Positions 5,128 through 64,000 of a DNA stretch of 64,000 nucleotides are shown here, one piece after another. Under the pieces are notes generated by a model. The model worked only from the letters and a program-made list of their open reading frames with translations. It did not search any database and had not been told where the DNA came from. This stretch comes from Podarcis cretensis (taxonomy: Eukaryota): the NCBI GenBank assembly GCA_951804945.1, contig OX638153.1, positions 58,838,001-58,902,000 on the forward strand, in the 5' to 3' direction. Each line of letters starts with the position of its first letter. Within the stretch, counting starts at the first letter, position 1. The translations under genes were made by a program, and so were the position numbers.

Positions 5128-5486
5128 GTAAAGGTAAAGGTAAAGGGATCCCTGACCATTAGGTCCAGTCGTGGCCGACTCTGGGGTTGTGGCGCTCATC
5201 TCACTTTATTGGCCAAGGGAGCTGGCATACAGCTTCCGGATCATGTGGCCAGCATCACTAAGCCGCTTCTGGCGAACCAGAGCAGCACGCAGAAACGCCG
5301 TTTCCCTTCCCGCTAGAGCGGTACCTATTTATCTACTTGCACTTTGACGTGCTTTCGAACTGCTAGGTTGGCAGGAGCAGGAACCAAGCAACGGGAGCTT
5401 ACCCCGTCGCAGGGATTCAAACTGCCAACCTTCTGATCTGCAAGTCCTTGGCTCTGTGGTTTAACCCACAGCGCCACCCACATCCC
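5128..5486 (-). mobile_element. Sauria SINE (Squam1/POM-type), older full-length copy
   Basis: (ACCTTT)n tail on the minus strand (aaaggtaaaggtaaaggg), diagnostic core gtacctatttatctacttgcac...gctttcgaactgctaggttggcagg, and 5' end acccacagcgccacc...ccc. Degenerate TSD at 5112-5124 / 5488-5500. Confidence 0.93.
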
Positions 5487-32630: not shown

Positions 32631-32786
32631 NNNNNNNNNNNNNNNNNNNNNNNNNNNNNNNNNNNNNNNNNNNNNNNNNNNNNNNNNNNNNNNNNNNNNN
32701 NNNNNNNNNNNNNNNNNNNNNNNNNNNNNNNNNNNNNNNNNNNNNNNNNNNNNNNNNNNNNNNNNNNNNNNNNNNNNNNNNNNNNN
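32631..32786. other. assembly gap (156 N)
   Basis: Run of N. Confidence 1.
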
Positions 32787-34838: not shown

Positions 34839-34970
34839 CAGCCAGGACCCCAAGGCCAACACAGCTGGAAATCTGGGGAGAAAATCATCTTTCATTTGCT
34901 TTACCGCACAGTAGACGACATTATTGTTGCAATACTCCAAGAGGCTAGCAAATCACTTCTCCACACGCAG

Positions 34971-35340
34971 GGGACGCAGGTGGCGCTGTGGGTTAAAGCC
35001 TCAGTGCCTAGGACTTGCCGATCGAAAGGTCGGCGGTTCGAATCCCTGCGGCGGGGTGCGCTCCCGCTGCTCGGTCCCAGCGCCTGCCAACCTAGCAGTT
35101 CGAAAGCACCTCCAGGTGCAAGTAGATAAATAGGGACCGCTTACCGGCGGGAAGGTAAACGGCGTTTCCGTGTGCGGCTCTGGCTCGCCAGAGCAGCGAT
35201 GTCACGCTGGCCACGTGACCCGGAAGTGTCTCCGGACAGCGCTGGCCCCTGGCCTCTTAAGTGAGATGGGCGCACAACCCCAGAGTCTGTCAAGACTGGC
35301 CCGTACGGGCAGGGGTACCTTTACCTTTACCTTTACCTTT
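34971..35340 (+). mobile_element. Sauria SINE, young full-length copy with 55-bp TSD
   Basis: gggacgcaggtggcgctgtgggttaaa head, (ACCTTT)3 tail, intact CpGs, TSD 34912-34966 / 35340-35394. Confidence 0.96.
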
Positions 35341-35875
35341 AGACGACATTATTGTTGCAATACTCCAAGAGGCTAGCAAATCACTTCTCCACACAGCCAA
35401 GATTGAGGACACAATAAAATGGTCTAGCAGTAGTTCAAAGTTACCAACTAGATCAGGCCTTGTGCTGTGCACTGTTCAAGACCATAGTGGCGGCAGGGAC
35501 CACAGTCTGACTTGGGCAGAGTTTCAGTGAAGAGGAAAAATGATGTGGTTGGAGGTGGAGAGGAGAGTACAAAAACCCACAGTTCCTCCACCTAGGTTTA
35601 CTCTCAGATTTTGCAAAGATGCAAGCATGTATTAGCAACGGCAGTAATTTCCCGCTGGCTTCCAGCCTGGCCATTAAATGGGCTGAATTTAAAAGTGTTT
35701 TAGCAGCACGACACCCATTCAAGTCAATGAGAATCACGTGGCTACAATTCACTAGGGAAAATACCATTTATGCTGCTTGCACTCCTCTTGCTTATTCAAT
35801 CCAAGCACATTAGCACTTCTCTCAAACTGCCCCCCCTCCAATTCTCAAAAATTATTGTTCTTTTAAACCAACACT

Positions 35876-43282: not shown

Positions 43283-44053
43283 TAGTAGTTTGGCACATTA
43301 TCCACAATGTGTGGGAGACCACTGAGGCAAAATCAGGGCTGTTCAGAATACCATACCTGTCTGACTCTTTTCTTTTAAAACACACACTCAGATGGCACAA
43401 AGGAAAAGAATGGTCTAGAACACTGGCTGTGAATGTGCAAGTGATCTGATCTTTCATACAGGGATGGATATATCCTAGTCAAACAGCATACCTTGGGAAA
43501 CTAGAAAGCAGGGCAGGGTAAAAGCTGGGAGGTAGCTCTGTCATCTGTTAAATGAAGAATCAGAGCCTACTTTTGAATAAGAATTAAGAAGCTGTAGGAA
43601 GTCCTCTAGATCTGGAACTTTTTGGCATGGAGGATGTAGTGACAGATTCTGTCGTCCCATACCAAATTCCCTTTAAGGGGGGGAAATAGAAACTTTAATT
43701 ATTTCAGGGGAATGGAACTACGTATCTGTGAGACCATCTGCCTCTTTGTCAAGAAGATAAACTATTGCCTTGCTTATGGGGGGGGAGCTTTGTTTTATTT
43801 TGATTGTTTGCTTGCTTCACTGGAGCAAAGCATTCAGAAGCTGCTACTGGTGGCAAGAGGAATGGTTGCCAGGCAATCATATGGTACGTTCAACATAGAC
43901 CCTTATCTGCCCATCTTCAGAAGAGGGATAGAACCATATACCTGACCATCTTGCTGACTTTCAGATTCCAAGTACTGTTAAAAGAAACCAACACGCTTCC
44001 AAATTTTTTTAAAGCTATTGGTATAAAACTAAATACATCAGGTATTGGGTATT

Positions 44054-44419
44054 GGGACGCAGGTGGCGCTGTGGGTTAAAGCCTCAGCGCCTAGGACTTG
44101 CCGATCGAAAGGTTGGCGGTTCGAATGCCTGCGGCGGGGTGCGCTCCCGCTGCTCGGTCCCAGCGCCTGCCAACCTAGCAGTTCGAAAGCACCTCCGGGT
44201 GCAAGTAGATAAATAGGGACCGCTTACCAGCGGGAAGGTAAACGGCGTTTCCGTGTGCGGCTCTGGCTCTGGCCAGAGCAGCGATGTCACGCTGGCCACG
44301 TGACCCGGAAGTGTCTCTGGACAGCGCTGGCCCCTGGCCTCTTGAGTGAGATGGGCGCACAACCCCAGAGTCTGTCAAGACTGGCCCGTATGGGCAGGGG
44401 TACCTTTACCTTTACCTTT
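44054..44419 (+). mobile_element. Sauria SINE, young full-length copy
   Basis: Near-identical to the 34971 copy. 12-bp TSD taaatacatcag (44030-44041 / 44419-44430). Confidence 0.96.
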
Positions 44420-47136
44420 AAATACATCAGAGATCAAAAGTATTTTATTTGTGAAGTTGAGGGACAACCAATTTTGTTTGCAACAGTCCAGCTTTTAAGA
44501 CACTTGACCCACGTTGGTTCTGCCTGACAGGTGGCTCTTAACCAGGGGATGAATCAGGCAAGGTAGCAATGGCACCTAGGAGACAGCAGCCTAGCAGCCT
44601 TTCCCCAGCCTGCGTATTGGGAAATTGTAAGGAAGGACATGACTCCCCACCAGAGGAGAACCAAGGGCTAGAAAAACTGGGTAATCTTAAAGTGACAGGC
44701 TGGCATAGGGCATATTTTCTTCCTTACTTTGGTCTGGGTACCATGGGCCTCTAATTAGCAAAGACAGGGAAGAGAACATGGTAAGAAAAAGAAGCTCTGT
44801 AAAGATCTTGAACCCTATTAAGAAAATAGGGCCATCCCTCATCCTAGTGTCCAGAATTCACCTTTCACCAGGAAGAGGTACAGCAGGTGAAAACTATCTT
44901 CCTCTACCTCAAGGAGAAGAGAGGAATGTCAGTATAATGGTCCATTTGTTTGGCACCTGCATACCACCTTTCTGACTTGCCCTGCTCTCTTTAAACTAAA
45001 AATTTGGTTGCTCTCCATATAGTTATTTATTTATACATTTTTTATACCCACCATTTCCCTTGACGGGACTCAATACAGCTATTTCAATTTAACAAAATAG
45101 TGGCCCTTTTTTGCACCTAGTTCTCCATTAATTTGGCATTATTCAATCTCCTAGCTCTCCAGGACAGATACAACACAGAACAGTGACACATCTCAGCCGA
45201 GATATGCAGGATTCCCTTCATGTGGAATGAAAAGCATCCCTTTGGGCACCTAGGGGCTGACAGTCTTTGCCGGCTAACACTTTGAACTGAATTCACAGTA
45301 TCTGAAGGTGAGAGGCAAACCAACCACCAAAGCAGTGTTCATTCTCCTGCTTTTACATTGTCTCCCTACAGACACTGCACCTTTTTGCCTCACAAGCATT
45401 TGTTCTGATGCTCCAGGAGACGTAGTGGTTGATCTGCTTCCCCCTCCTAGGAAGCAAATAAAAATCAGATGACCTAGTTTGCCACCATGGGGAATAGATG
45501 GCACCTACACAGCGCAGATAATCCAGGGGAAAGCAACGGGCGGGCAGGCAGTGTCAGGAGGGCAGCTTACATAGCACTTGCATGTCATGCTACTGAAGTC
45601 AATGCCTGAAAGCAGTCAGTGCTTATTGTCCCCTTGGTTTCAGGAAAACTGGGGGGGGGGGGGGGATACAGATAATCAAATGCTTACAAAAGCTAACAAG
45701 CGACAGCTCCTTCTTTAATATCAGATGCAAAAAGTTGTAATTTAATCTATTTTAAACGCAGGCTCTTTTGATTGTTCTTCAGTGGCACTTTAACCAACTG
45801 GAGCAGATGGTTAATGGTAGGGCTAATCAACAGCATCACTTTGAACTTGACAACATCCTCCATCACAAAAATCTCAGTGAGCTTCACAAGTCCCAACACA
45901 TTAAGCCTCAGTGTTAAGAAAGCCACAAGTACCCCCTGCTCCAACTGATGGAATTAAATTATGGAAGTTATTAGGCATTTCTCTACAAGCAAACGCAGAG
46001 ATAATAAAAAATAGAACTAATGAGTGTGCTCTGAGCACTAGCCTGTAACCCAGTGAATTTGGATTATAAATAGAAAATAGGTTAATAATCTGCTATGCTA
46101 CTCTTGAGTTGATGCTTTGGGAGCAGCAGTTTTACTATCACTGAACCTACCCTATCACAGAGGTTCATGGCAAGTTTCAATATACCAAAACAGTAAACAA
46201 AGCCATCTCTGAAAGAGTACCTAAAATTAGACACATCATACAACACTTTGAAAGCTGTTCAAAATAGCAGCCTTGTCTCTCAAAATGTTTCTGCCTGCAT
46301 CCTCATGCAGACTTAAGATAGCACACCCTATTGTACGGGACAGCTAGGAACAAATATGCTTGGTAAACTCAGCTTGCTATTCTGACACCGAGACAGGCAT
46401 TCCATGCTGGATGTTTGGTGCTGCATAGCAGGATGTCTTAACTCTTGACCTCTATATCTGTACAATAAAAAACACCTGGTGTGAGAGGATCCCTAGTATC
46501 CCAACCACTGTCTTTTAACTGCACATTAGAAACACAGAATCTGAACATCCTTAGCAGCAAAAAGATCCTCATTGATTAGTCCCCCCGCCCTGCCGCCATG
46601 TAGCAGAAAGTGCTTTCTGACCCCAAGTGCTTGGATGGGACAAGGAGTGTCTATAAAACAAGAAATTAATTGGTTCAAGTTAATTAACTGAAGTAACATC
46701 GAAGTTAATTATTTGAAATAACTAGATTACCAACAAGCAACAGCCCTTAAAATAATTAGCAGTAAAATGGTAAAGATTTGTTTAAGAATATCCCAGCATA
46801 CAGGATTTGTGGGCCAGGAGTTGGAGTACAGTAGAAACAAGCAAACCACACCAAAAAAAAAAAAAAATAGATAGGAAAAAATATAGGGTGGAATCCAACA
46901 TAGCACTAAGGCAATTGTTGCATCAATGCAAGGACTATTGCTTGTGCAACGGAACGTTCTCCCACCTCCCCTTCCCTCCCCCTGCATGCTTCTTAAATTT
47001 GAGGAGGGTGTGCACAGGAAGTGGAGAGGGAGGGAAGTTTCACTGTGCAAGCAGAAATTCTTGTGTTCACTTTGATGCATTAGTAGCTTACCTCCTATAG
47101 TTTCTAAATTCAAATTTAATCTATACCTAGGATATA

Positions 47137-47720: not shown

Positions 47721-47795
47721 GTGAACTACTAAACACCTATAGCACAGGAAATGTATTCTTGCCTAGCCAGTTTATTGGGATGATGCACCTAGTAC

Positions 47796-47831
47796 CTACA
47801 CTTGATCTTAGCCAAAAGGCCGAGAAGCGAT
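47796..47831 (-). pseudogene. RNU2: U2 snRNA 5' fragment (nt 1-36) retrocopy
   Basis: Reverse complement reads ATCGCTTCTCGGCCTTTTGGCTAAGATCAAGTGTAG, identical to the conserved vertebrate U2 5' end. Confidence 0.97.
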
Positions 47832-48181
47832 GGCGCTGTGGGTTAAAGCCTCAGCGCCTAGGGCTTGCCGATCGAAAGGTCGGCGGTTCGAATCCCTGCG
47901 GCGGGGTGCGCTCCCGCTGCTCGGTCCCAGCGCCTGCCAACCTAGCAGTTCGAAAGCACCTCCGGGTGCAAGTAGATAAATAGGGACCGCTTACCAGCGG
48001 GAAGGTAAACAGCGTTTCCGTGTGCAGCTCTGGCTCGCCAGATGCAGCTTTGTCACGCTGGCCACGTGACCCGGAAGTGTCTCCGGACAGCGCTGGCCCC
48101 TGGCCTCTTAAGTGAGATGGGCACACAACCCCAGAGTCTGTCAAGACTGGCCCGTACGGGCAGGGGTACCTTTACCTTTTT
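47832..48181 (+). mobile_element. Sauria SINE, young, ~11 nt 5'-truncated and fused to inverted U2 fragment
   Basis: Near-identical to the 34971 and 44054 copies. The TSD acctagtaccta (47787-47798 / 48182-48193) encloses both U2 and SINE. Confidence 0.96.
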
Positions 48182-49177
48182 ACCTAGTACCTAATGCCCT
48201 AGCCTCAACAGGCCTCCCTGCTGAGCTAGTTTCCTGGTGGGAAGCCAGTACCTGCAGACATGCATGAAATCCAAAATGATGCTCCTGCCAAGCTAGTCTA
48301 TTGGTGAGATGCACCTGAAGCTGCTCTGTTCTCAAACGATGCCCACACACCAATTGCCAAGAAGGCTAAGGAGCACAGACAGTCCAGATGAACTAAAGGT
48401 GGTGGAATACCTGGAACCAGAGAGCAGGGCTGAATAGCTCACTATGGAGCAGTGAGGAAACAAGGAGAGGGGTGTGGCTGAAAGACCACTTTAAACATTT
48501 CCACCTTTGGAAGAGGTGACTGGGAACTGTTGTGCTCTGTGTCACTAGACAAATCTCAAAAGGAGAAACTGCTGCTAACTACCCTCCAAGACCCTTTCTG
48601 AGGATCTCAGGACTCCTCATCATCACTCCTAAAATAAACCCCACATACACCCCAGGGAACCACACCGGGATGGTGGGTGGAGGAGGAAGAAGAACAAACA
48701 CTTAATGGGGTTGAATGAGAAGAAGAAAGGGGCTGGAAAGAAACTAATGAAGAAGAAAATTAATGTTTCACGGCAGGAAACAGAATGAGAACATGGAAAG
48801 GAAGGAACACACTCAACCAAACTGGATAAAAAAAGAGTTTAGAAAAAATTGGAAAACACACACACCATATAGTCAGAAGATAAACTGCTATATAGAGCCA
48901 TTCAACCCACCACCTAGACCACCCACAAACTGGGTTGGCTTGGTGGGCAGAATGGCTCCTCCCTTTGGAGATGAGGCAGAAGACCTAGTTGGACCCTGCA
49001 TGTCACATCTGGTGACAAGTGTCACCCCATCAGAGGAATGTCTTCCATCCTGATCTTGCAAAAATTGTAATCTCCTCATTGAGCTGATTATAATGGGCAA
49101 AGTTAACCTAATGTGTCCCATCAGTGAAAGTCTTGTGCAAGGACTTCTGCTTTTGCACCCTCTCCAGTGTGCACACA

Positions 49178-49430
49178 GAGCCAGTGTGGTGTAGTGGTTA
49201 AGAGTGGTAGTCTAGTAATCTGGGGAACCGGGTTCGCGTCTCCGCTCCTCCACATGCAGCTGCTGGGTGACCTTGGGCCAGTCACACTTCTTTGAAGTCT
49301 CTCAGCCCCACTCACCTCACAGAGTGTTTGTTGTGGGGGAGGAAGGGAAAGGAGAATGTTGGCCGCTTTGAGACTCCTTAGGGTAGTGATAAAACGGGAT
49401 ATCAAATCCAAACTCTTCTTCTTCTTCTTC
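49178..49430 (+). mobile_element. Squam3-like tRNA-derived SINE with (CTT)n tail
   Basis: A box tggtgtagtgg, B box-like gggttcgcgtctc, CORE-like gtgaccttgggccagtcac, L2-like 3' end and (CTT)5 tail. Confidence 0.85.
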
Positions 49431-50149
49431 CTCCGTCACCATGTACCTTGAATGTGGCTCAGGGGCAGTGAGAAATCCAAGAATAGCACACAGCGGTAGG
49501 AGAGGGGGGATTGCTTCATCTGGCAAGCTGCAATGCTTGCACAGATGGAACATTTGGAGGAGCGTGACATTGAATTCCACCCATCACATATGTACTCAGG
49601 GAAACCTGACAGATATTTTGGAAATTTAATTGTTTGCAGTAACTGAATACAATTAATTTTAATTCAAGTAATTAAAAAAAATTAATTTACCTTGGCATCT
49701 TGGCTATCTCAGACAGAAACCTGTAATGTGTGTTCCCCTTTAGTTATCAAAAAGAAATATTTTTTGCTTCTGAACTATGAAGAAGTTGCACTTGAAGATC
49801 TTTCCTAAACTGTCAAGCTAAGTCCTGTACATAGATACAAGTGAGTCTGATAAACTCAGAAAACATCGTTGCCAAAGTATACTTGCTGCCCTGAAAAGCC
49901 TTGATTCTTCCATGTAATTAAAATATAACTAAATTAGAAAATGCATTTATGAAATGGCTGAAAAACCAGGGGAAGGAGGGATCAACTCTCCTGGACGATA
50001 AACTGCCCCTGGTATATGGCAAGCCAATCCTGTCTCCAATGTGGCTTTTCTGCCCATTCCATCCTGCTCCAGTGACATTTGTTTTATTGCAACCAATACA
50101 TTAAATTTAATGGAAGCCACTAAAAGGCACTAAAGCAATTGCTCTGAGG

Positions 50150-50151
<2 letters not shown>

Positions 50152-50190
<39 letters not shown>
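50152..50190 (+). repeat. (CT)n microsatellite
   Basis: Read directly. Confidence 0.97.
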
Positions 50191-50193
<3 letters not shown>

Positions 50194-53100
50194 GTTAAGC
50201 AGGGATATTTTTGGGACACAATTAATGTTGTCATATGCATGCTCTAAAGATGTCACAAGGTATTACATAACTCATGTGTGCTACTCGAACAGTAAACTAG
50301 CACAATGCGTACTAGAAGTAAGAAAACCACCACTTCAGCAAGCTGATATCATCCATGAGCTTGGAATTCAAGCCCCAGAAAACAAAGGTTAAAATTCCGA
50401 AGTACACTTCATACTTAAATGAAAGCTGGACATTTATGAAATTCTGGTGGTTATTTTGGTGTGTATGAAAGAGCCTGTTAACAATGAGGACCATTTCAGA
50501 TCTTTCTTGTATAAGTTTTGGAGTACTAAATACACATGCACAAAGACATTTATGGATATATGACCTGACCATGAAACAAATTAACAGTGGCTTGAAAAAG
50601 CTTGAACATATTCTTTCCTGCTCAAAATACCAAGAACAGCCACTTAAAGCAACTACTATATTAATTTATTTGTAGCTGGGGACTCAGTACATACCCAGAT
50701 GTAAAGAGAACAGAGCACAGCACTTAGGATCATGGTGAGGATATGTGAGCCTGCAAACAGCAACTCCTAAGTTTATTTGCTTTTTAAAACTTGTTTGAAA
50801 TAAACTGATGAAAAGCAGAGGGAGCAGAAGAAAATTTAGCTAATAGCTTTACACAAATTAGTATTACTGAGCAACAGAGCTCTTATTACATCATAACTGT
50901 AATCACTAAGGGAAGAGCTAAATGTCATGAGACAGACAATCCCAGCAAAATTACTAAAGGTTTGAATCAGGAGAACTAGATAGGAAATGCATGACAATGC
51001 AGAATAACAATGTGGAATGACAGCATGATATAGTAGTTTTGCTACAGCTGATTGAAAGAAACGGGGCACAAAGACAGAACTGGCTGAATACATCTGCCCT
51101 GACTGTGCAGCAAAAATTACAGCAGTCACTTGAAGGTTTCTACAATATGGCTTGTTCTGGTCCTTCTCTTTGGGGGAGTGACCAGCAGAGTAGCCCACAC
51201 ACTCTGAGGGTTAAACTTAATTATCCTCCCCACATCCACATCCAGTAGAGTAGAAAATGAAATGGAGGGACAAAAAATGAGCAAGTATTGAGAGGCAAAT
51301 GCATAGTGAACAATAAGAAGTACTCTACGTATTATAAAATTGGGAAAGCCTGCATGTGGACACAAACTGAGAAGCATGTTAACTAAATCACAATGCCTGG
51401 ATGCAACAATTGCTTTGTGGAGTTGCCTGCATAGCCAGGGGGTTGGGGTGGGAGTAGACTTGATCACAATGACATTCCCTAGTTTTGAATAATCATGCAA
51501 TTTACTTAATTATTTATAAGTTACAAAATTGGATTTCTTATCAGATTTTAACAAGAGATATCCTTTCAAAAAAGCATATTCAATGCTCACAACACGCTAT
51601 TGCCAAAAAATATTGCACTCTCTCACCCTCCCCCTGCTTTAGCCAATGTATTTAATATGATGTTCCAAATTATTAACTGTGTGTGCTATCTAGTCAAGCT
51701 ATTTGTTCAAAACACTGGAATATATATTTTAGCTCATTATTAGATTGGTTAAAAGCAGAAGCATTCAGAAATATTTAGCTTTAAAAAATCAAAAATAGAG
51801 CAGAATCCCATATCCAGAATGATTCCATGATTCTCACTGCAGAAGCAGATCTAAGGCCCTCTTAGGATGGACATATAGAGAAATGCTGAATCAAAGAGAG
51901 TTGTTTCTCAAAACCTTTCAAGCATCTACAAAATGCAGACCCTTCCCTCATTTTTTTTATTTTTTTGGAAGGGTCGAAGAAAAGGGGCTCAAATGTTCAC
52001 CTATTGTGTGGCGACAGTGACAGCAAAGGCTATTAACCAATGAATCCACCCCAGTCCAATGTAGCAATGACCAAGATAGCCAAGCCTGGTTGCCTTGACA
52101 ACCGGTGCAAGATCCCTCCTATCCCTAATCTCTGATATCATGGTTCATGGTGAGGGCAAAGCAACCTGCTGGAAGGAGGTGTGGGTGGTTATTGATTTGT
52201 TTCTGTTCTTGAGGGGTTTTTTTGGCCTTGTATTTTTATGTTGTAAACTGACCTGAGGACTACAGATGATGGGGGCAGTATACAAATTTAATAACTAAAA
52301 GTAGAAACGAATATATTGGCTTCATTTGCCCTCAGTGAAATCATTACTCTCACTACCTGATCTGTGATTGGCTAGGTTCATTAGTCCCAGGAAGATGTTC
52401 CAGTTTAAAAAACCAGGCAGTGAATAGCAGTGAGGAGATAGGAAGGTAAACAAAATTTGAGTGTTCACTGAACATTCCACCCCTTCTCCAAAGCTTTACC
52501 TCCATGCACAAAATTGAAGTGGCTACCATTTAGCATAGCCCTAGCCTAGACCTTCCTCCTTTGGATGCCATCCGGAGGTCCCACCTCTTTTTAATTAACT
52601 CCTCTCTATTTTGATCTTTCTGCCACTTTGGGGTAATGCTTCCATTTGAAAGAAGAAATCAAACCACTTCCCTGCTTCCTAATAATCTCTCCTCAAACTG
52701 CTCTGTGCATCAGAGCTGATTTCATTACCTGCCGCCTGCTGCTGCTGCTGGTTTTATTTAAAGCACAGGCGTGTGGTGAAGAAAGAATTCAGCATGACCT
52801 CCCTGAACTGCTGGGGGATGAATGCTCCACTGCACTGACAGGGAGAAGCTGCTTCCCTTTCTTAAAACTAGCAGACTAAGCCAAGCATGGTTGCGAAGCC
52901 TCCCACATCCAGGGCCCCCTTTTCAATTACTGCACGTGCTGAAAGGGTTTAAAAAAAGAAGTAAAAAAAGCATAGGCTGGTATAATCAACAGTGAACAGA
53001 TGAATGAGAATCTGTAAAATACAACATCATAGAACATAGTAACGGGTACAGCAACTCCTGGCAAGAAAATTAAGTTGAATAGATTGTCTGGAGCTTGGCA

Positions 53101-53928
53101 GTACTCGTTCTGCAGAGGAACTGTACAAAGGAAAGCCAACAAGAACAAGGATGCTGCATCATTAATCCCTACCTTCAGGTTATCTTGCAATGCATCAACA
53201 TAATAAATGGTAACTGAAGGGAAAGAATGGTGGACCGAGTGTATGACTAGCTACTGCCAAGCTTCAAAATTCCTAAGCCCCAGTTCTCTCTGTGTGTTTT
53301 AATGAAATGGACAAGAAGGTCAACCTTTTCCTCCCTGAAGCTATTTAACTTCAGGAAGGCCCATTTACGCAGCTCTGACAGGCAAGGAAGTAGAGGAATC
53401 AGGTTGAATTATGATAAAATAAAATATAACCCTAATTGCTCTCTCTATGAAAAATCTCCTCATTTAGAAATGTACTTAAAATAGCTATTCATGGCTTAGT
53501 GAATTCCATTACACTGAAAAGTCAGCATCAACTATTACGTATATTCACATAATCCTAGCACTCCCCCAAATTAAGTTGCATTCCAAATGTTTCCCAAGGT
53601 CTCACTGTGCATTTCCAGAGACATCACTTATCAAGTACACATTTGCAAATGAGAAACCACCTTGACCCTGCTGTGCATTCTCTTTCAATTCAGGGTAGTC
53701 TTGGAAAAAGTCTTTCTTCCTGGGCCACAGCTCTGCCTTCCTAGACTTAAACCATGTGGCAGCACATGCCCCATTTATTGCTCATGTGATGCTATTTTGA
53801 AAGCTTGCTAAACCCTAGCAAGGGGTAATATAAGGCTTCCAATGCAGTCAGCCGGGACAGAGTAGGGTGAACTTTTCTGAACATGCTCCATAAGAAATAA
53901 CAGAATTAAAAAGATGCATGTAACTCAC

Positions 53929-54007
53929 CTGTTCTTCTGAAAGCTGTGAGATGTGATTCACAGCTGCGTAAGACTCTATCTTTGGATTGAAATGGTTGAT
54001 AATGGCT
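53929..54007 (-). CDS. ARMH3: ARMH3 third-last coding exon, (R)[26 protein letters not shown]
   Basis: Acceptor ctctctgtttcag|A, donor CAG|gtgagt, 79 bp (1 nt + 26 codons), in frame with the next exon. Confidence 0.96.
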
Positions 54008-55054
54008 CTGAAACAGAGAGTGAAAATATTCCCCATTACGTGTTGCAAAAAGCATTTTCTTCTACTGTATTGCATAGCTGTGGTGTCATTTTAGCTGACA
54101 AAGTTTAAAATCAACAGCTCAAAGGCATATATTTACACATATCAGTTCTACATGGAAAACCAATAAAAATTAGGACCATCTGGTGGTTACTAAGTTACCT
54201 AGGATTTCTTATTTGACACCATACCTTGAAGCCCTCCTCTTGAGTTTGCCTGAAACAGATTCTAGAATAATATATCCATACATATAGTCTTGGTCTGTTC
54301 AGTCATCTGGATATTTCTGCTTCAAACAGATTATATATATATTTTCGGGGGGGGGGGAAGGTTCTCCGTAATTATGATCTAACAAAAAATGCAGCTGAGG
54401 AGATGAGGTTCTAGGGATCAATCAGCAATTTCCCTTCCTCTGATGGCTCCAGTGTTCACAGTCACCCTAAACATGAAGCAGCTTATGTTTTGCTACACAA
54501 GAGCTGAATGTAGACATTTTCAAAGTTGCAAAACAATGCTGGCATCAGGCCTGTCTGCATGTATGATACTTCTTGCCTGTTGGAATCTTTCAGCCTTTCA
54601 GTGCTGAGTAGTCTCAGGCAGTATTTGTGGGAATATGGTCATTTGTCCATAAGAGCATGGGCAAAAGTTCATTATTGCAAGGTGATTTCATAGCAGAAAG
54701 CATTGCTTGGAGCATGATCAACGCATGAAGAGCTCATGCTGCCCGATGATTGGCCCACGTAAGCATAGCATGATCAAATACGTGGTCTGGTGTGAGAAAA
54801 TGAGACTAATGTATTGTATTGTCTTTTATCTGCTGACTGAGGCAAAGCTCTCTCCTTGAATTTGTATCTTTTCGTGGACACACAATAAAGGTTGGGGCAG
54901 CAGCAGCTTCTAGGGAGAGCTGCGGCCAGATTTCTACAACCCATTTTGGTGTGAGACTGATTATTTACGGATGGCGAGCGGGTTCTCATCAAGTACTCAA
55001 ATCCAGAAATTGCCACAATGGTTCTCAGACTTCAATTATGCTGTCCTCAGAAAC

Positions 55055-55055
<1 letters not shown>

Positions 55056-55100
<45 letters not shown>

Positions 55101-55470
55101 CCGCCCATCTGGTTGGGTTACTCTGGGCGGCTTCCAACAGAATATTAAACAGAATAAAACTTCAAACATTAAAAACTTCCCTAAACAGGACTGCCTTCAG
55201 ATGTCTTCTAAAAGTCAGATAGTTGTTTATTTCCTTGACACCTGGTGGGAGGGCATTCCACAGGGCGGGTGCAGCGAGGGAACTGCCAGAAGGCCCTCGG
55301 AGCTGGACCTCAGTGTCCGTGCTGAACGATGGGGGAGGAGACACTCCTTCAAGTATACTGGACCGAGGCCGTTTAGGGCTTTAAAGGTCAGCACCCATAC
55401 TTTGAATTGTGCTCAGAAACATACTGGGAGCCAGTGTAGGTCTTTCAGGACTGGTGTTATGTGGTCTCAG
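55056..55470 (-). mobile_element. L2 LINE 3' fragment with (TAA)n tail
   Basis: (TTA)n tail. Minus-strand translation includes APALWNALPPGVKEINNYLTFRRHLKAVLF, the L2 ORF2 C-terminus. Confidence 0.9.
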
Positions 55471-56905
55471 CTGCCAGGGTAACAGCTGCTATGCTAGTTT
55501 CCCAGCAGATGTGATGCTGTTACTTACTAGGAGATGGGAGGTGTGGCAGGGAAGTCAGCGCAGTGCAAGCATGCCAGCAGGACTGCCAAATTCGCATCGT
55601 ATTGACTTCTTGGTAAGCAAAAGTAATCCATCTGCTGAGAAACTAATGTAGCAGCTGCACCATACCAGATGAGCCACCTATGACTATCCCATAGCACCAC
55701 TATTTTGGGAAGACTGGTCAGTCATATTACCAGAAAATCTCCAGCACTAAGACAATACTGTATATTAGAGGAGACAGTTTTAAGTCGAGTTCTTCCCAAG
55801 CAAATTTTATCAGCCAGAGCAGTCTATGGTGCATTGTGTATACAGTTGCATGTAGCTTCTTAAGTATGCTCTCTGTGGCCTAATGTGATATTAACCGAAA
55901 CAGATAGTCAACAGCAAAATATGATACTAATGACACTTCTGACCCAACTATAGCATCAAAGGCGGACAGCATGTAAGCAACCTTATCTGCAAAGCGCATA
56001 ATAAACAAGTCACAGCTGAATGGAGATGCTGACAAGAACAATATATTTCAAATAACTTCCACTTACTCCTCAGTACAATGTTGAATCCCCGTACAAGGCT
56101 ATTAGAGTCTTAGGAGTTAAGACAATCAAAATGTATTTTTATATATTGAGAATATTTCTAAACCACCCTCCATCAGCAGATTGCAAGGTGGTATATAAAA
56201 GTGCAAATAAAATTAAGTCTCACACAACGTACAAATGCAATTTGTGACCAACACAAAATAAAATAAAACAAAGGCAAATGGAGATAAAGCATGAACTTCC
56301 TTTTTGTTTCAGGTTGTTAAAAGTATCCCGGTTCTATGAATACAAATACTGATTTCTTTATGGTAAGTGTGATAACAGCTCTTCTAAATGTAAATTGCTT
56401 TCATAGACATAGCAGAGGTCAATACATTACATGAACACTAAGGAGATGAAGAAGCGATCCAAACGGTTGCCTACAAAGGCTGCACTTGTTTCCCTAACCT
56501 AAAACTTTTCTTAGTTCTTGGAACTAAGTTCTCTCTCCAAACCTCTTGCACACAGAACCCTTAGAATCCATTCCTTATTCCAACTACTAGAGAACATTCG
56601 CATAAGCATGCTAAAAGTCTTTATTTTGATAATTTTGCTTTTATATAATCATTGTACAGAATACAGTGCCCCATAATGAGCAAAGAGGGACAAGCAAAAC
56701 CCTTTGTAAAAAGACAGCTGTATTCATCCAATGAGAAGGAACTGGCTCTCAGCCCACTATGCTTTATCAAGGAGATTAGTGCCAGGGTAGGAATAAAGTT
56801 TCATTTTTGGTGGTGATGGGAGGGAAGTATACTTTGAGGAGACGCTTTACCTACTGCTACAAAAAAGTAACAGAGGAGCAAAACAAACACATCCTTCTCA
56901 ATATA

Positions 56906-57151
56906 CAGCCATACCTCGGGTTAAATATGCTTCGGGTTGAGCATTTTTGGGTTGCGCTCTGCGGCGACCCGGAAGTAACGGAACACGTTAATTCTGTGTT
57001 TCGCTGCTCGCGCATGCGCTCAAAATGACGTCAAGCACATGCGCGGAAGTGGCGAATCGCGACCCGTGCATGCGCAGACGCGTCTTGCATTCACTTCAGG
57101 ATGTGAACGGGGCTCCGGAACGGATCCTGTTGGCATCCAGAGGTACCACTG
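56906..57151. mobile_element. Tc1/mariner (Tigger/pogo-like) MITE
   Basis: TA TSD, ends cagccatacctc ... gaggtaccactg, and subterminal ggaacggat shared with the 41109 and 42938 elements. Confidence 0.8.
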
Positions 57152-58571
57152 TAGATATATCTAAACTTAAACATTGAATTCAAGGGGGGGGGGGACCATT
57201 AATATTAGATAACAATATTATCAATCCAAAGAGAACAAGAGTAGCTGGAAGTCCCCAGGAGTCCCCAACCTAGGTGATATCCTCTATAAATATTGTATTC
57301 ATAACACACTCAGACATTCTAGGATTTGGGTAAGGTAAACCAACAAAACTTCACAGTAAGTCCAATTTTTCTCTCTTGGAAGGGGAGGCAGAGTAGTATG
57401 TAGCTAGAACATTTCTATCAAGAAGTATTATGGGAAGGAAACAGGGATCACTCCTCCACTTTCCCTTCAGCACAACCCTTAACACTGCCTGAAACAGGAG
57501 GAGTAGCTTCTTCTCAAAGCAAGCTGCTCTCCCCCACCAACTGAGACCAGTGACTTTGATGGATTCCACTTGCCTATGCCAGCATCATAATGCAGCACTA
57601 ATGTATTTTCTGGACCACAAAAATAATTAGTTTTGGTGTGGCTTAGCACTTCTAAAAGTTATTGATTCACTCCAAGCTACATGCAGCATGACCTTTTATC
57701 CCTACCCTCCTATGGTAAGAAGGAGCATATGGTATTCATGAGGTGCAGGGAGGGGTTCCTTCATAAACAGATTACACATGACTGCACTTTAATTTAGTCA
57801 GATCCAGCCTTCCTACATAGTCCTATTCTGCAGAACTTCGGAGCAAGAGAGCTTGCTATAAAGCACTCTTCTAAGTAGCTAGAAAAGGAGAACTGTGAAG
57901 AGGCCACAGAACGAACTATGAATGGAGGGATTCCCATCTGCCATCATTTAGATCCCCTGGGAAACCCACTAAGCCTTCTGAAGCCTGGAACTGGGTGTGT
58001 GGAGAGCAGCTGAGTGACCACTCAATGCTATACAATTGTAGACATCCAGAGGAAGTTCCATCAGACTTTGGTGCCTGTCCATAAACTCCAGAGTGAAAGA
58101 CTAGGGTGAAGTCATCATTTTCAGGGGCCCCTCTTCCTTGTGAGAAAGTTTGGGCTGACCCTTCAAGTGTTCTCAAAATATTGGGTGGTATTCAACTAAC
58201 CCACCCTGTCAGCGCAAGGATTTCCACCTGCACAATGAGACCTTCTCCCCTCAAGGAGAACAAGCAGCACAAGCAGCAATCCTTGTTCACTTAGCGCTAT
58301 ACTGGATTTCATCCAGTATTTTAAGTGTAGAGAGCTCAGCAGCAATTTTGCAAAGATTTCAGTCTTCCCTTATAGTACCACCTTATTAACGTCAGCCATG
58401 CATAAATGGCAAGAAGTACCAAACATGTGAAATGAGATGAATATGACAGAAGGATGAAAAGGGGAAAACGGAGAATAAAATATCCAAGTAAAATTACCTT
58501 ATGGGCAGCTATAGAGTCAGAGCATAGAATAAATCAATAAAAACAAATTGATAAAAGTAATCAAAAGTGAC

Positions 58572-59112
58572 TGTCAAAAGCCCCATGGCAACAAACAAGG
58601 AGGGATGGTCATGGCAGGATCTCTCAGAGGGAGCAGGAAATAGGAGGAGGGGTCCAGATAGTCTGCCCAGATGCTGCTGGACATCCCAGCTGTCAACCTG
58701 CCTCTAGAGATTGAGATTGCCCTGGCAACCAGGGAGGTAAATGAGCCTGAATCAGATAGTGAGCTGGCCCCATCTCCAAAGATGTGCTGTTAAATGTGCT
58801 GGCAAGCAGATCCAGCCTACACACAGGAGTGCCCGCTTGCTTGGAGTCCAGTCCCATTGTTTGGGACATGAATCATGTGACCATCCTGCTCTGCAAAGCA
58901 GGAGCAAAGTGGACATGTCAGCTGTTGTGACAATGTGTTAGCTTCTGCCAACCATGTTTCTTACACTTTTATTTCTGAATTACTGATTCTGTAGCCTGTA
59001 TCTTAATCTATGTTTAAACTATGTGATGACTTTTGGAATAAAGCCTTTGAGAATTCTCAAGTCGAGAGTCCGAGTACTTTGTCTGAGAGTGGGAGCCAGG
59101 AGAGTGATGCTT
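58572..59112 (+). mobile_element. probable solo LTR
   Basis: Starts TGTCA, ~540 bp long, AATAAA at ~59037 followed by U5-like GT-rich sequence. The right end is degenerate. Confidence 0.5.
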
Positions 59113-59853
59113 GATGAACTACTCATATATATTGTCAATTGAAAAACATATTTTTAAGTAATAGCTAGAAGACCATTACCTCCAGTACAGACCAGGGCAA
59201 ATTTTAAGATTTTCCAATGAGACCCTGTCGGTGTTTCCACAACTACCAGATTACTACAGGCCTTGTAGTGATAACATTCGCCATCTCCCTGTGGAATGAT
59301 GTGCAATTCATGAGCCTTTAAATGCTTCTTAAAAACTTGCCTGTTTACACAAGCTTTTTTAAGAAAACTCTTGACTCTTAATTTTAAATTGTTTTTGTTT
59401 TGCACACTAGTTTTATTTCTGATACAGATTTGTTCTGCTATAAGATTTTAATTATATATACATATTTTAAGCTCTAAGAGACAAATAGTCACCTGAGCCA
59501 GCAAGTTTATTTGGAAAAAAAACACTGGTGTGGGTGTAGAGAGAATACATAATGTGGGTGTGGATATTACATAATGTGTAGCTTGGCCATTACTCTTTTC
59601 CTAGTGAGCGTTCATATACTTAAACTGTTTCAGCCAGAAGACACCCAACCCTGGTTATGTCCATAGAACTCAAGTACTCCTTCGGTGTACTTGCTTACGA
59701 CTTCCTCCGGATACTGGTGGTAATACAGGCAGAGTCAGCAGGCCTAACATTACTACTACTGTTGCTTCATGCAAACAACAAATAGATTTTATGAGAGCAC
59801 TAATTTCCTCTTGAACATGATGTGTACTACCCTGACTCATCATATCAAATTGT

Positions 59854-60043
59854 GGGGAGAATCATAGCTCAGTGAAAGAGTACATGTGATACATACAAAA
59901 CAATCCCAAGTTCAACCTGACATCTCCAGGTGGGCTGGGAGAGACACACGAAATTCTGGAGAGCTGCTGCCAGTCAGTGTAGGCAATACTGAGCTAAAGG
60001 GAAAAATGAACTGCCGCTGTATAAACAGCCTTCTGTGCTCCTT
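59854..60043 (+). mobile_element. Squam2-like tRNA SINE
   Basis: atagctcagtgaaagag A box, agttcaacc B box, and ctggagagctgctgccagtcagtgtaggcaatactgagcta body. Confidence 0.7.
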
Positions 60044-61770
60044 TGCTCTAAAAGTTTAATTATGGGTACTTGTCCAAGTAAGAAATTTGCCCTGGAGTAC
60101 ATTGCTTGCCTCATAACTTGCCTCTGAGCAATTAACTCAATTGGATAAGTTTATTGTTACCATGCTTATACAAATCCGATATATATATAATCAAGGCAAC
60201 TGTGACTTAACTCTCTTCAAATGCATCCTTCTCACGGTTTCAATTCCAGAAGTAGGTGAGCAAAACAGAATAAAGCAAAGCCAGCAAAAAATATTTAAAA
60301 ATCTGTACTATTCCCCTGGTTCACATCTGAAGCTGGGTTCAATTGGCTCTTCCCTTAGTAATGTGCTTTATTCACAGCACCCCAACTTCTAACCTCATAA
60401 AGTCACTGAACTGTACATTAGTATAAACACAAAAGCCCTGTTTTAGACAGTTCTGTGCTTTAAAGATGCATCTATTCCATGCTATTCTACATTTCTTTTT
60501 CAGATTAATAATGCAACTGTGAGGCAAATTATCTAAGAATTAACTACTCGAGAGCAAAACTATTGTAATTCAGGTCTCTGCTATGGATCCAGAATACCCT
60601 GGACAGGTCTCCTAATTTATAGATTAGCCACAAACAGGATATTGATTCGCCTTAAACTCAGAGCTGTTTGAGACAGACACTATTTTCCATGGCAAATGAA
60701 CATCAAAGTAATTTTCTTTCACAGAACTGGGCAGGAAACAACCTTGTGCTAAGGCACCTTTGACTAGCACATATTTCATCGCTGAAGTGGTAACACAAAT
60801 TCACTGGAATTCTGCAACATTAACGAATTTGCTTTAGCACAAACTGAAAGTCAGCCTGCTGAGAGACAAAGGCAGACTTTTAATCTGCAAAAGAACACAC
60901 CTGTTTGGCAGGAAGCTTCTGATTAGAAAGGCAAGGTTAGGGGAAAGCCAGGTTTATGTCTCCTTCGGTGCATAGAAGATGCATTCAGACATAATGCTGA
61001 GCCAAGAGGTATGGCTTGTTTAATCACACTGGGCAAAAGTTCCATGCTTGTGGCTTGTTTCTCCCACAAAAGAAATGTTGGCTTCAGATCATGGTTTATG
61101 TGGAGGGAAGCAAACCATAAGAATTGGTTCAGATGCAACGCTAAGTCAACTGCTGTTTCCCTGATCCACTGTGGCAGGAGCAAAGAGGGAGAGCTCAAAC
61201 TGTGCGCACCTTTTAAAACTTTTAACATTGCAATCATGCTTTAAATGAGCCATCAAGTAACAGGAATCTTTTCTTTGTTGCTGTTGTTGTTTTATTAAAC
61301 CTGGGCAAAAAAACCAGAGTTAGTTGCTCCAGATTTTTGGGGTTCTTTCTCCCAAAGATGTCTGCTGGCATGAGAAATCTTGCATTCTCATCCTCCTCCA
61401 TCTTCCTTTTCATTACTGGAGCCCAATTGCCTCCACTTCACCACCAGTCAGCTATGCAGATAATGAAAGGTAACGAGTTCCACTAATTCCTTCCTCTTTA
61501 CTTAGTTGGTCCATAAGCCAACGAAAGTTATCACCTCTCTGTTTCAACACCCCCTCGAATTGTGTTCTGTTTCTAACCTAGTTTTTCTGCACACCTAAGG
61601 CATAAGCTCTTCAGCTCTTAACTCTTTGCCAAACCACTGCATTATTCACATACCTTCCCTCATGACACACTGTGCCCCTGCCCCAAGAAAAGCACCTCTT
61701 CCTCTGCTCTGCTATCCTCACTTATTTACACCCCCTGGAAACCTGCTCTCTTCTCTCATCCCAGAAACCA

Positions 61771-61874
61771 CTAGCATTTACATCAATAATCACTTTAAAA
61801 TCCTCTAATTGTGCCCAACTTCCTAGCATTTGCAAAAATAACCACTTTAAAACCATCTATTTGTGCCCAACTTC
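61771..61874 (+). repeat. 52-bp tandem duplication (2 diverged units)
   Basis: ctagcattta...tgtgcccaacttc repeated as ctagcatttg...tgtgcccaacttc. Confidence 0.85.
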
Positions 61875-64000
61875 CTCTCCCCCACCACCTTTCCATACTC
61901 TTACTAGAGAATTGGGATATTTTACAGCACATGCTTGCTTTTCTGCTTAGCTCCTGCTTTTACCTATAGTTGCCAGAATAATGAACAGTTCTGAGCATTT
62001 ATTAGCACCATAAATTCTGGTTAGGATTAAGTGCTTTAAATAAATTGTTTCATTAATTTCTTCTTGATAAAATTCACTGCTCTCCTCTGGAATACTCTTG
62101 TCTCAGGCCTCTTAAATTCTCTTTAAAAAGAACATCAGATTTCAGTAGCACTTGAACACCAGCATTAACACAACATTCAAAATTCCTCTCCAAATGTTAA
62201 GGGTCCATGTCTGAAAAGTGCACACAGGCGTGTCAACCAGGGCATATGGTAACAGAACATCCCACCATATGCCAGCTGACACACAAAACCCAATCTATAA
62301 TCTTTAAACAATGGCCTAATAGTGCTGTAATGGGCAACCCTGAGCAGAGAGGTTGCTGACATTCTGAACCAGCTCCCATGGCTTCTGCCATTGTGAATTC
62401 AAGTCAAGTAAACCATTCAAGAAGCAGCCAAAGAGGAAGCTCTTGCTGCAGCTAGGACTTTCCTCCTAACCCAGCTTTAATGATAAGGCTGCTGTTCCTC
62501 TGTGCAAAGTGTCAGGGTTGTTTTCCTCCTCAGTAATGAGCATAAAAATAAACCAGTGAGTTTACGCTTTAAAAGGAGGGATCCACTAGCCACAAAAATA
62601 AACGGCAGGGGGGAAAGCAAAACAAAGGGATAGTTTCATCAGACAGTATAAGCAGATTCTTTTTAAGGGTACAGAAAAATATTTGAGTCAGCAGTGTTGT
62701 CAGATGGTAGGAGAAAGCAACCTGTTACACCTGTTCATTCCTGTCATGTAGGGATGTATTCTTTGTGTGGTAGATGGATTCTGTGTTGAGGGAGCCTCAC
62801 ATCCCATTTTAAAGAAGCAGGGGGGAAAGTACAGAAGAGAGCCTGCTTGTGTAGGCTGAACCTTCAGCAGCTTTTCAGCCTCTCTTGTTTTCATCTGGCT
62901 CCGTTTGCTTCCAAAAGGGAACACACTGAATGCTTTTGATTCCTTCCCCAGCACTCAATTTTCTATCTCTCATCACTTTCTGGTTATTAAGCAATTCAGT
63001 CTATCTCTGTAGCTTGAAGAATAAGCTAATTTTCTGCTGCAACGCATGGCTGTAGATTTAAGATGAGTGATGTATCCGAGTTCTCACCCCCCCACCCCTC
63101 TTAAATCACTGCTCTTTGACTTCTGCCAGAGTAGATAGCAGAGGTCCAAAGATCAACCACTTCAGTGTGACCATTTACCAGTCACAATGCATATAAAGCA
63201 GGTATTCACAGCAACCTTTCACACAGCATATCTGTCACATGTCAGCAAGAGCTTTCCTATGGAAATAAAATGCCTCTGCACCCAATGAGCCATAATGAGT
63301 TCACATTGGACAATAACAGTGCCTGATTGGGACATAGATTCTTTAAACATCCATAAACATCAAAAAGGCATTCATTTACAAAGCAGTTGTTAGTGAAGCT
63401 AATGGCTGATTAATTCAGAGGGAACCCTGGGAAGCAGGGCCACTCTATCAACTCTGTTGGAAGACCAACTCCATCAGGCTTATTCCTCAACCACCACATG
63501 GCAGCAACCATTCTATCAGGCCACAGCAGAGAGGGAGATGAGAGGAATGGCCTTTCCACCTGTCCTGCTATGAGAACAACAACATTTGGGCTCATCCTCT
63601 CCCTAAACAGCTAGTCCTTAAACTTAGATAATAACTGGTGTGTGCTTGCCTCCTCTTCCTTTCTCATCTCTTTCTCCTTTTGTATTGTGTTAGTTGGGTC
63701 AGAAGCTAGCAGGCAGGGACTGTATTGTTTTCATTATTCACATGTTAGCCAGTCAGTTAAAAATTTCAAGCATTCTGGATCATTCACCAAGACATCCATC
63801 CTTCTGCATAAAGATTTGCAGCCCAGGAGGCTTAAAAGTAAGCAAACGGACCATGAGGATTTATTCTAACCAACCACAGACACCAGTGCTCCTGTTAGGC
63901 ACCTTAACTATGCCTTTGGGTACAACATAAATAAGTCCACTTTGTACCGCTCATCTACTACATGTACTTTGTCCATATTTCCCAGTGGCTAGCTGTAATT

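Follow-up and report, generated by a model that had tools for sequence, protein, structure and literature searches.

For L1 retrotransposons, twin priming with 5′ inversion was reportedly described by Ostertag and Kazazian in 2001; the 3′ end of the top strand is said to prime a second cDNA, and both cDNAs would be joined through microhomology. In the human genome, seven 3′-truncated small nuclear RNAs (snRNAs) were found by Doucet et al. in 2015 to lie opposite in orientation to an L1 or SVA element within one target-site duplication (PMC4476161). This inverted set comprises U1 up to nt 40, U2 up to nt 55, U5 up to nt 36, 43, 46, and 48, and one U6 case; the duplications measure 14-20 bp and the junction homologies 1-4 nt, with a 14-bp duplication and a homology of 2 nt in the case of U2 nt 1-55 joined to L1 (PMC4476161). 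The snRNA breakpoints are located in unpaired loops, and the authors explained the chimeras by reverse transcription of the snRNA starting at the break in the top strand, in other words by twin priming on a second RNA (PMC4476161). A preprint of 2025 describes antisense 5′ fragments of 5S rRNA (nt 1-45), tRNA halves (nt 1-37), and U5 joined to L1 across primates, which are ascribed to twin priming (10.1101/2025.02.02.635956). Chimeras of U6 and L1 are explained either by template switching or by RNA ligation involving RtcB (PMC6789731), and SINEs with heads derived from U1 or U2 have been described by Kojima in 2015 as SINEU (PMC4494074). For elements of the RTE clade, no report of twin priming or of snRNA chimeras was found in the literature.

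The locus described here is part of a stretch of 64,000 nucleotides from the lizard Podarcis cretensis (assembly GCA_951804945.1, contig OX638153.1, positions 58,838,001 to 58,902,000 of the forward strand), the whole of which is referred to as the window. At this locus, an antisense piece of U2 snRNA and a Sauria-type SINE are arranged head-to-head, with the following features:

47787..47798, no strand assigned: left 12-bp copy of the target-site duplication, ACCTAGTACCTA, an exact 12-mer common to both flanks
47796..47831, minus strand: U2 snRNA nt 1-36, with positions 1-36 all matched in the Rfam alignment (36/36)
47831..47841, plus strand: junction together with the A-box-like motif TGGCGCTGTGG, from the alignment with the three other SINE copies and the Pol III consensus
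47832..48181, plus strand: Sauria-type tRNA-derived SINE without its first 10-11 nt, as aligned with the other three SINEs of the window
47885-47895, plus strand: B-box-like motif GGTTCGAATCC, from motif reading within the SINE
48168..48181, plus strand: SINE 3′ tail ACCTTT ACCTTT TT, from direct reading
48182..48193, no strand assigned: right 12-bp copy of the target-site duplication, directly after the SINE tail

The U2 piece was detected on the minus strand by the Rfam model of U2 (RF00004) in a 6-kb search, with an E value of 8.6e-06 and a score of 40.9 bits, which is below the gathering score of 46 because the 5′ end of U2 alone is present. Positions 1-36 of the model correspond to 47831..47796 of the window with 0 mismatches, and no position beyond 36 is matched; the span reported by Rfam is 47748-47831, the part outside 47796-47831 consisting of gaps and filler. 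None of the 36 U2 nucleotides is substituted. The breakpoint created by the 3′ truncation falls within the branch-point recognition sequence GUAGUA, a stretch which is unpaired in U2, and U2 nt 1 is the nucleotide that meets the SINE at the internal junction (47831/47832). Since the piece ends exactly at the transcription start, its source would have been the RNA and not a U2 gene. A DNA-level patch from a U2 gene was considered and rejected on the same ground. Neither self-comparison nor an Rfam search of positions 1-47790 and 47838-64000 yielded a second U2-like piece or any other small-RNA piece in the window.

The SINE at the focal site is 350 nt long. It shares 96-97% identity with the copies at 34982-35328 and at 44065-44413, and with an older copy, which lies on the minus strand at 5136-5475, the identity is 81%; against the majority of young copies in the window, the focal SINE carries about 7 private differences in 332 nt, corresponding to a divergence of about 2%. 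All three other copies start with GGGA(C/T)G(C/T)(A/G)GGT followed by GGCGCTGTGGG, whereas the focal SINE begins with GGCGCTG, so that 10-11 nt are absent in comparison. A microsatellite-like (ACCTTT)n 3′ end is typical of Sauria SINEs, and the 3′ end which they have in common with the Bov-B LINE is the basis for their RTE-dependent mobilisation (PMC13295347); tail and 3′ end together link the Sauria SINE to Bov-B, a LINE of the RTE clade (PMC13295347, PMC6007223). A Bov-B copy with the same 3′ end as the SINE was not found in the window. No tRNA was called by ARAGORN in another SINE copy or by Rfam in the window, and the tRNA origin of the SINE rests on the literature. The motif TGGCGCTGTGG is taken to be an A box on the basis of the known Pol III consensus. 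In the focal SINE, it is the complement of U2 nt 1 that provides the first T of this box, and transcription of the focal copy by Pol III would begin inside the U2 complement and include about 11 nt of antisense U2.

The longest repeat common to both flanks is the exact 12-mer ACCTAGTACCTA, and it encloses the U2 piece and the SINE together; a second duplication around the U2 piece alone or around the SINE alone was not seen. The chance of such a 12-mer is about 4e-8 per given position and about 4e-6 over 100 candidate positions. Both flanks are unique in the window except for one weak self-match of 34 bp with 79% identity; this uniqueness speaks against a local tandem repeat as the source of an apparent duplication, and that explanation was rejected. 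Short homologies are found at each of the joints. The CTA at 47796-47798 is at once the end of the left duplication copy and the complement of U2 nt 34-36, a homology of 3 nt with a chance of 1/64. On the SINE side, the ACCT at 48182-48185, with which the right copy starts, continues the ACCTTT unit of the tail, and the first strand may have been primed through this match. The T at 47831, at the internal junction, belongs either to the complement of U2 nt 1 or to the SINE, where it would be nt 11; this amounts to a homology of 1 nt.

For Sauria SINEs, a Tn-TA target signature has been described, with TTT about 10 nt upstream and a duplication starting with T (PMC13295347). The focal site conforms to it only loosely: the duplication begins with A after C, the TTT is located at 47771-47773, which is 14-16 nt upstream, and a T/A step (47790/47791) is found 3 nt inside the duplication. 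A good fit to the signature is seen in the copy at 34982. This copy, with the SINE at 34967-35339, is flanked by an exact direct duplication of 55 bp (34912-34966 and 35340-35394), far longer than the 12-bp duplications of its two neighbouring copies. Its 5′ end is preceded by 4 additional nt, GCAG, which together with the duplication-final AC repeat SINE nt 4-9 (ACGCAG). The copy at 44065-44413 has a 12-bp duplication, TAAATACATCAG (44030-44041 and 44419-44430), and a filler of 12 nt, GTATTGGGTATT, before the SINE start; the filler and the GG behind it form GTATTGG twice in succession. Additional nucleotides between duplication and SINE 5′ end are thus present in two of the three other copies (4 and 12 nt), and an untidy 5′ junction is usual for this element.

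The remainder of the window offers little further context. An exon-like ORF is not visible in it, and of ten ORFs beginning with ATG that were taken from the unique flanks (46.7-49.1 kb) none was found, as an exact sequence, in the protein collection. A 32-nt pattern from the right flank gave no match in metagenomes, as expected for a lizard locus. A run of 156 N bases at 32631-32786 represents an assembly gap or a masked stretch, and long poly-Tyr and poly-Leu runs in the ORF translations at 54990-55110 indicate a trinucleotide microsatellite.

The architecture had been outlined by an earlier, sequence-only reading, which had placed an exact reverse complement of U2 nt 1-36 at 47796-47831, directly against a Sauria SINE short of about 11 nt, and had seen one 12-bp duplication around both parts, an overlap of CTA with the complement of U2 nt 34-36, and a match of ACCT to the tail. 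Each element of this description was borne out: the first by the Rfam alignment (36/36), the second by the comparison with the three other copies (10-11 nt absent), the third by the exact 12-mer at 47787-47798 and 48182-48193, and both homologies by direct reading.

The locus is probably the outcome of one retrotransposition event which yielded a chimera of two RNAs. Judged from the sequence, a single event for U2 piece and SINE appears well supported, given that one duplication encloses both parts and that the U2 copy ends at nt 1 of the RNA. The SINE, with its divergence of about 2%, and the unchanged U2 piece would also fit one shared age. On the plus strand, the U2 complement runs from left to right from nt 36 to nt 1, as a cDNA would that had been extended from the left (top-strand) end of the target; priming at the 3′ end of the top strand would be expected to leave this orientation and a homology such as the 3 nt seen. 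Taken by itself, the 3-nt homology is weak evidence, as homology of this kind is produced by end-joining, too.

In the proposed pathway, the endonuclease/reverse transcriptase of a Bov-B-type LINE of the RTE clade would nick the bottom strand where the duplication now begins on the left, as suggested by the known biology of the family. The SINE RNA would be copied starting from its (ACCUUU)n tail, with which the ACCT of the target may pair. Judging from the layout, the top strand would be cut 12 nt downstream, and its free 3′ end, terminating in ACCTAGTACCTA, would pair via CTA with U34-A35-G36 of U2, a stretch that is normally unpaired. This end would be extended by reverse transcription up to the capped 5′ end of U2, with run-off at nt 1; the polymerase may be the RTE-clade enzyme itself. 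The 3′ end of the U2 cDNA would then be joined head-to-head to the SINE cDNA, presumably via the homology of 1 nt (T); the SINE would have lost its outermost 10-11 nt, perhaps by trimming of a flap, or these would never have been copied. Gap repair would eventually give rise to the 12-bp duplication.

A single event might also have taken place without priming from the top strand, if a ready-made run-off cDNA of U2, self-primed or primed elsewhere, had been captured as filler by end-joining, its orientation being a matter of chance. Capture is evidently common at this junction, as inferred from the fillers of 4 and 12 nt in other copies of the window, homologies of 1-3 nt are typical of end-joining, and short 3′-truncated snRNA cDNAs are a known class, being represented by groups of 3′-truncated pseudogenes (PMC4476161). 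However, a separate source would be needed for a cDNA which starts exactly where the target end can pair, and the orientation would be explained by nothing more than a 50% chance. The published inverted chimeras are strongly skewed towards antisense (80% for U5, and most of the 5S and tRNA cases), which favours priming (10.1101/2025.02.02.635956). Capture of a filler is considered less likely than priming, albeit as a close rival to which the other copies of the window lend some weight. Doubtful to a higher degree is the derivation of the locus from a chimeric source copy, in which an older U2/SINE chimera would have been transcribed from upstream and retrotransposed as a whole, so that the focal event would be an ordinary SINE insertion. 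A duplication around both parts is what a composite element would leave behind, and the intact A- and B-box-like motifs imply that the copy could be transcribed. Pol III normally initiates about 10-12 nt upstream of the A box, though, and a transcript started there would retain only about 11 nt of the U2 complement instead of 36. Moreover, the U2 piece is present in none of the three other SINE copies of the window, and it would have to be a coincidence that the end of U2 overlaps the duplication by 3 nt.

An origin in two separate events, with the U2 fragment preceding the SINE or following it, is highly improbable, even though tailless 3′-truncated retrocopies of snRNAs do occur alone (PMC4476161). 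If the SINE had come second, its duplication would repeat the end of the U2 piece, while it actually repeats sequence to the left of that piece; if U2 had come second, its insertion must have fallen exactly where duplication and SINE meet, without a duplication or tail of its own. There is, finally, the possibility of an assembly artefact, namely a chimeric join at a repeat, for which the incomplete recovery in short-read contigs of related samples might be quoted; these contigs hold 0.45-0.84 of the sampled words (19 indexed of 24 runs, 8 organisms). A mis-join would give neither an exact 12-bp duplication nor a U2 end at nt 1 nor unique flanks on both sides, and this explanation can hardly be credited. 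Preference is therefore given to one event with priming on two RNAs, whose one-step character is suggested by the arrangement of the insertion.

With regard to this mechanism, the proposal of the sequence-only reading, twin priming on two different RNAs by an RTE enzyme, holds insofar as the single event, the orientation, and the 3-nt homology are concerned; the RTE enzyme as maker of the U2 cDNA is conjectural, and capture by end-joining would leave an indistinguishable locus. The contrast drawn with the same-orientation chimeras of U6 and L1 is correct as to orientation, but novelty was overstated in it, inverted snRNA chimeras having been published (PMC4476161). A further suggestion, that the Bov-B/SINE ribonucleoprotein contacts the U2 snRNP, found no support. 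One locus is concerned, and U2 ranks among the very abundant RNAs of the nucleus. L1 and SVA give rise to the same layout in human, so that a contact specific to Bov-B is not implied; the inverted layout points rather to a property of the small RNA or of the open break as its cause.

If the layout is read correctly, twin priming on foreign RNAs would extend from mammalian L1 to the RTE-clade machinery acting on its SINE. The second target end would then be free to prime reverse transcription also in a LINE clade whose endonuclease has another preference and which lacks both ORF1 and poly(A) priming. In annotation, short antisense pieces of snRNA at the 5′ junctions of reptile SINEs would have to be regarded as insertion scars and not as snRNA genes or regulatory elements. 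The case is a single locus with no evident effect on the host. A more far-reaching and rather speculative idea, to which a low probability is assigned, is that the branch-point stretch of U2, along with the matching loop of U5, serves as a recurrent landing site for the top-strand 3′ end of several LINE clades (RTE/Bov-B, L1, HAL1-like) in the lizard. In that case, the 5′ side of the integration intermediate would be routinely exposed to spliceosomal snRNPs, and RTE-clade enzymes, which are devoid of ORF1, would also perform second-end priming on foreign RNAs.

Comparing the locus with the known systems, the U6/L1 chimeras resemble it in having a spliceosomal snRNA at the 5′ end of a retroelement within one target-site duplication. 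They differ in that U6 is full-length and points in the same direction as L1, while the focal U2 is antisense and comprises nt 1-36 only. The U6/L1 layout is impossible by top-strand priming, just as the inverted layout of the focal locus is impossible by template switching or RNA ligation; both of these were rejected for the locus because of the wrong orientation. As in SINEU, the 5′ end of a SINE carries sequence derived from U2, but in SINEU the head is in sense orientation and belongs to a multi-copy family, whereas the focal piece is antisense and unique within the window. In twin priming of L1, both cDNAs are derived from the same L1 RNA, while the second template would be a different RNA here. 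In the primate chimeras with 5S rRNA, tRNA, and U5, short antisense 5′ fragments of abundant small RNAs are likewise placed head-to-head with a 5′-truncated retroelement within one target-site duplication; all of these chimeras are L1-driven, and neither a U2 case nor a primary SINE was found in the passages searched.

The closest counterpart is provided by the “twin” class (Group IV) of Doucet et al. (2015). As in that class, the snRNA is antisense, with an intact 5′ end at the internal junction and a 3′ truncation within an unpaired region; both parts are surrounded by one duplication, and the 3 nt of homology at the focal site are within the 1-4 nt of the human cases. Differences concern the breakpoint in U2, which is at nt 36 instead of nt 55, the host, which is a lizard, and the partner, which is a Bov-B/RTE-dependent SINE with an (ACCTTT)n tail instead of L1 or SVA. 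The LINE behind this partner has a single ORF and does without poly(A) priming, unlike L1. In the antisense snRNA, the 3′ truncation, the single duplication, and the complementarity at the breakpoint, the focal locus agrees with this class. The twin-priming model for inverted snRNA chimeras is already published for human L1 and SVA, and what is new is the partner only, namely a SINE dependent on an enzyme of the RTE clade in a lizard host.
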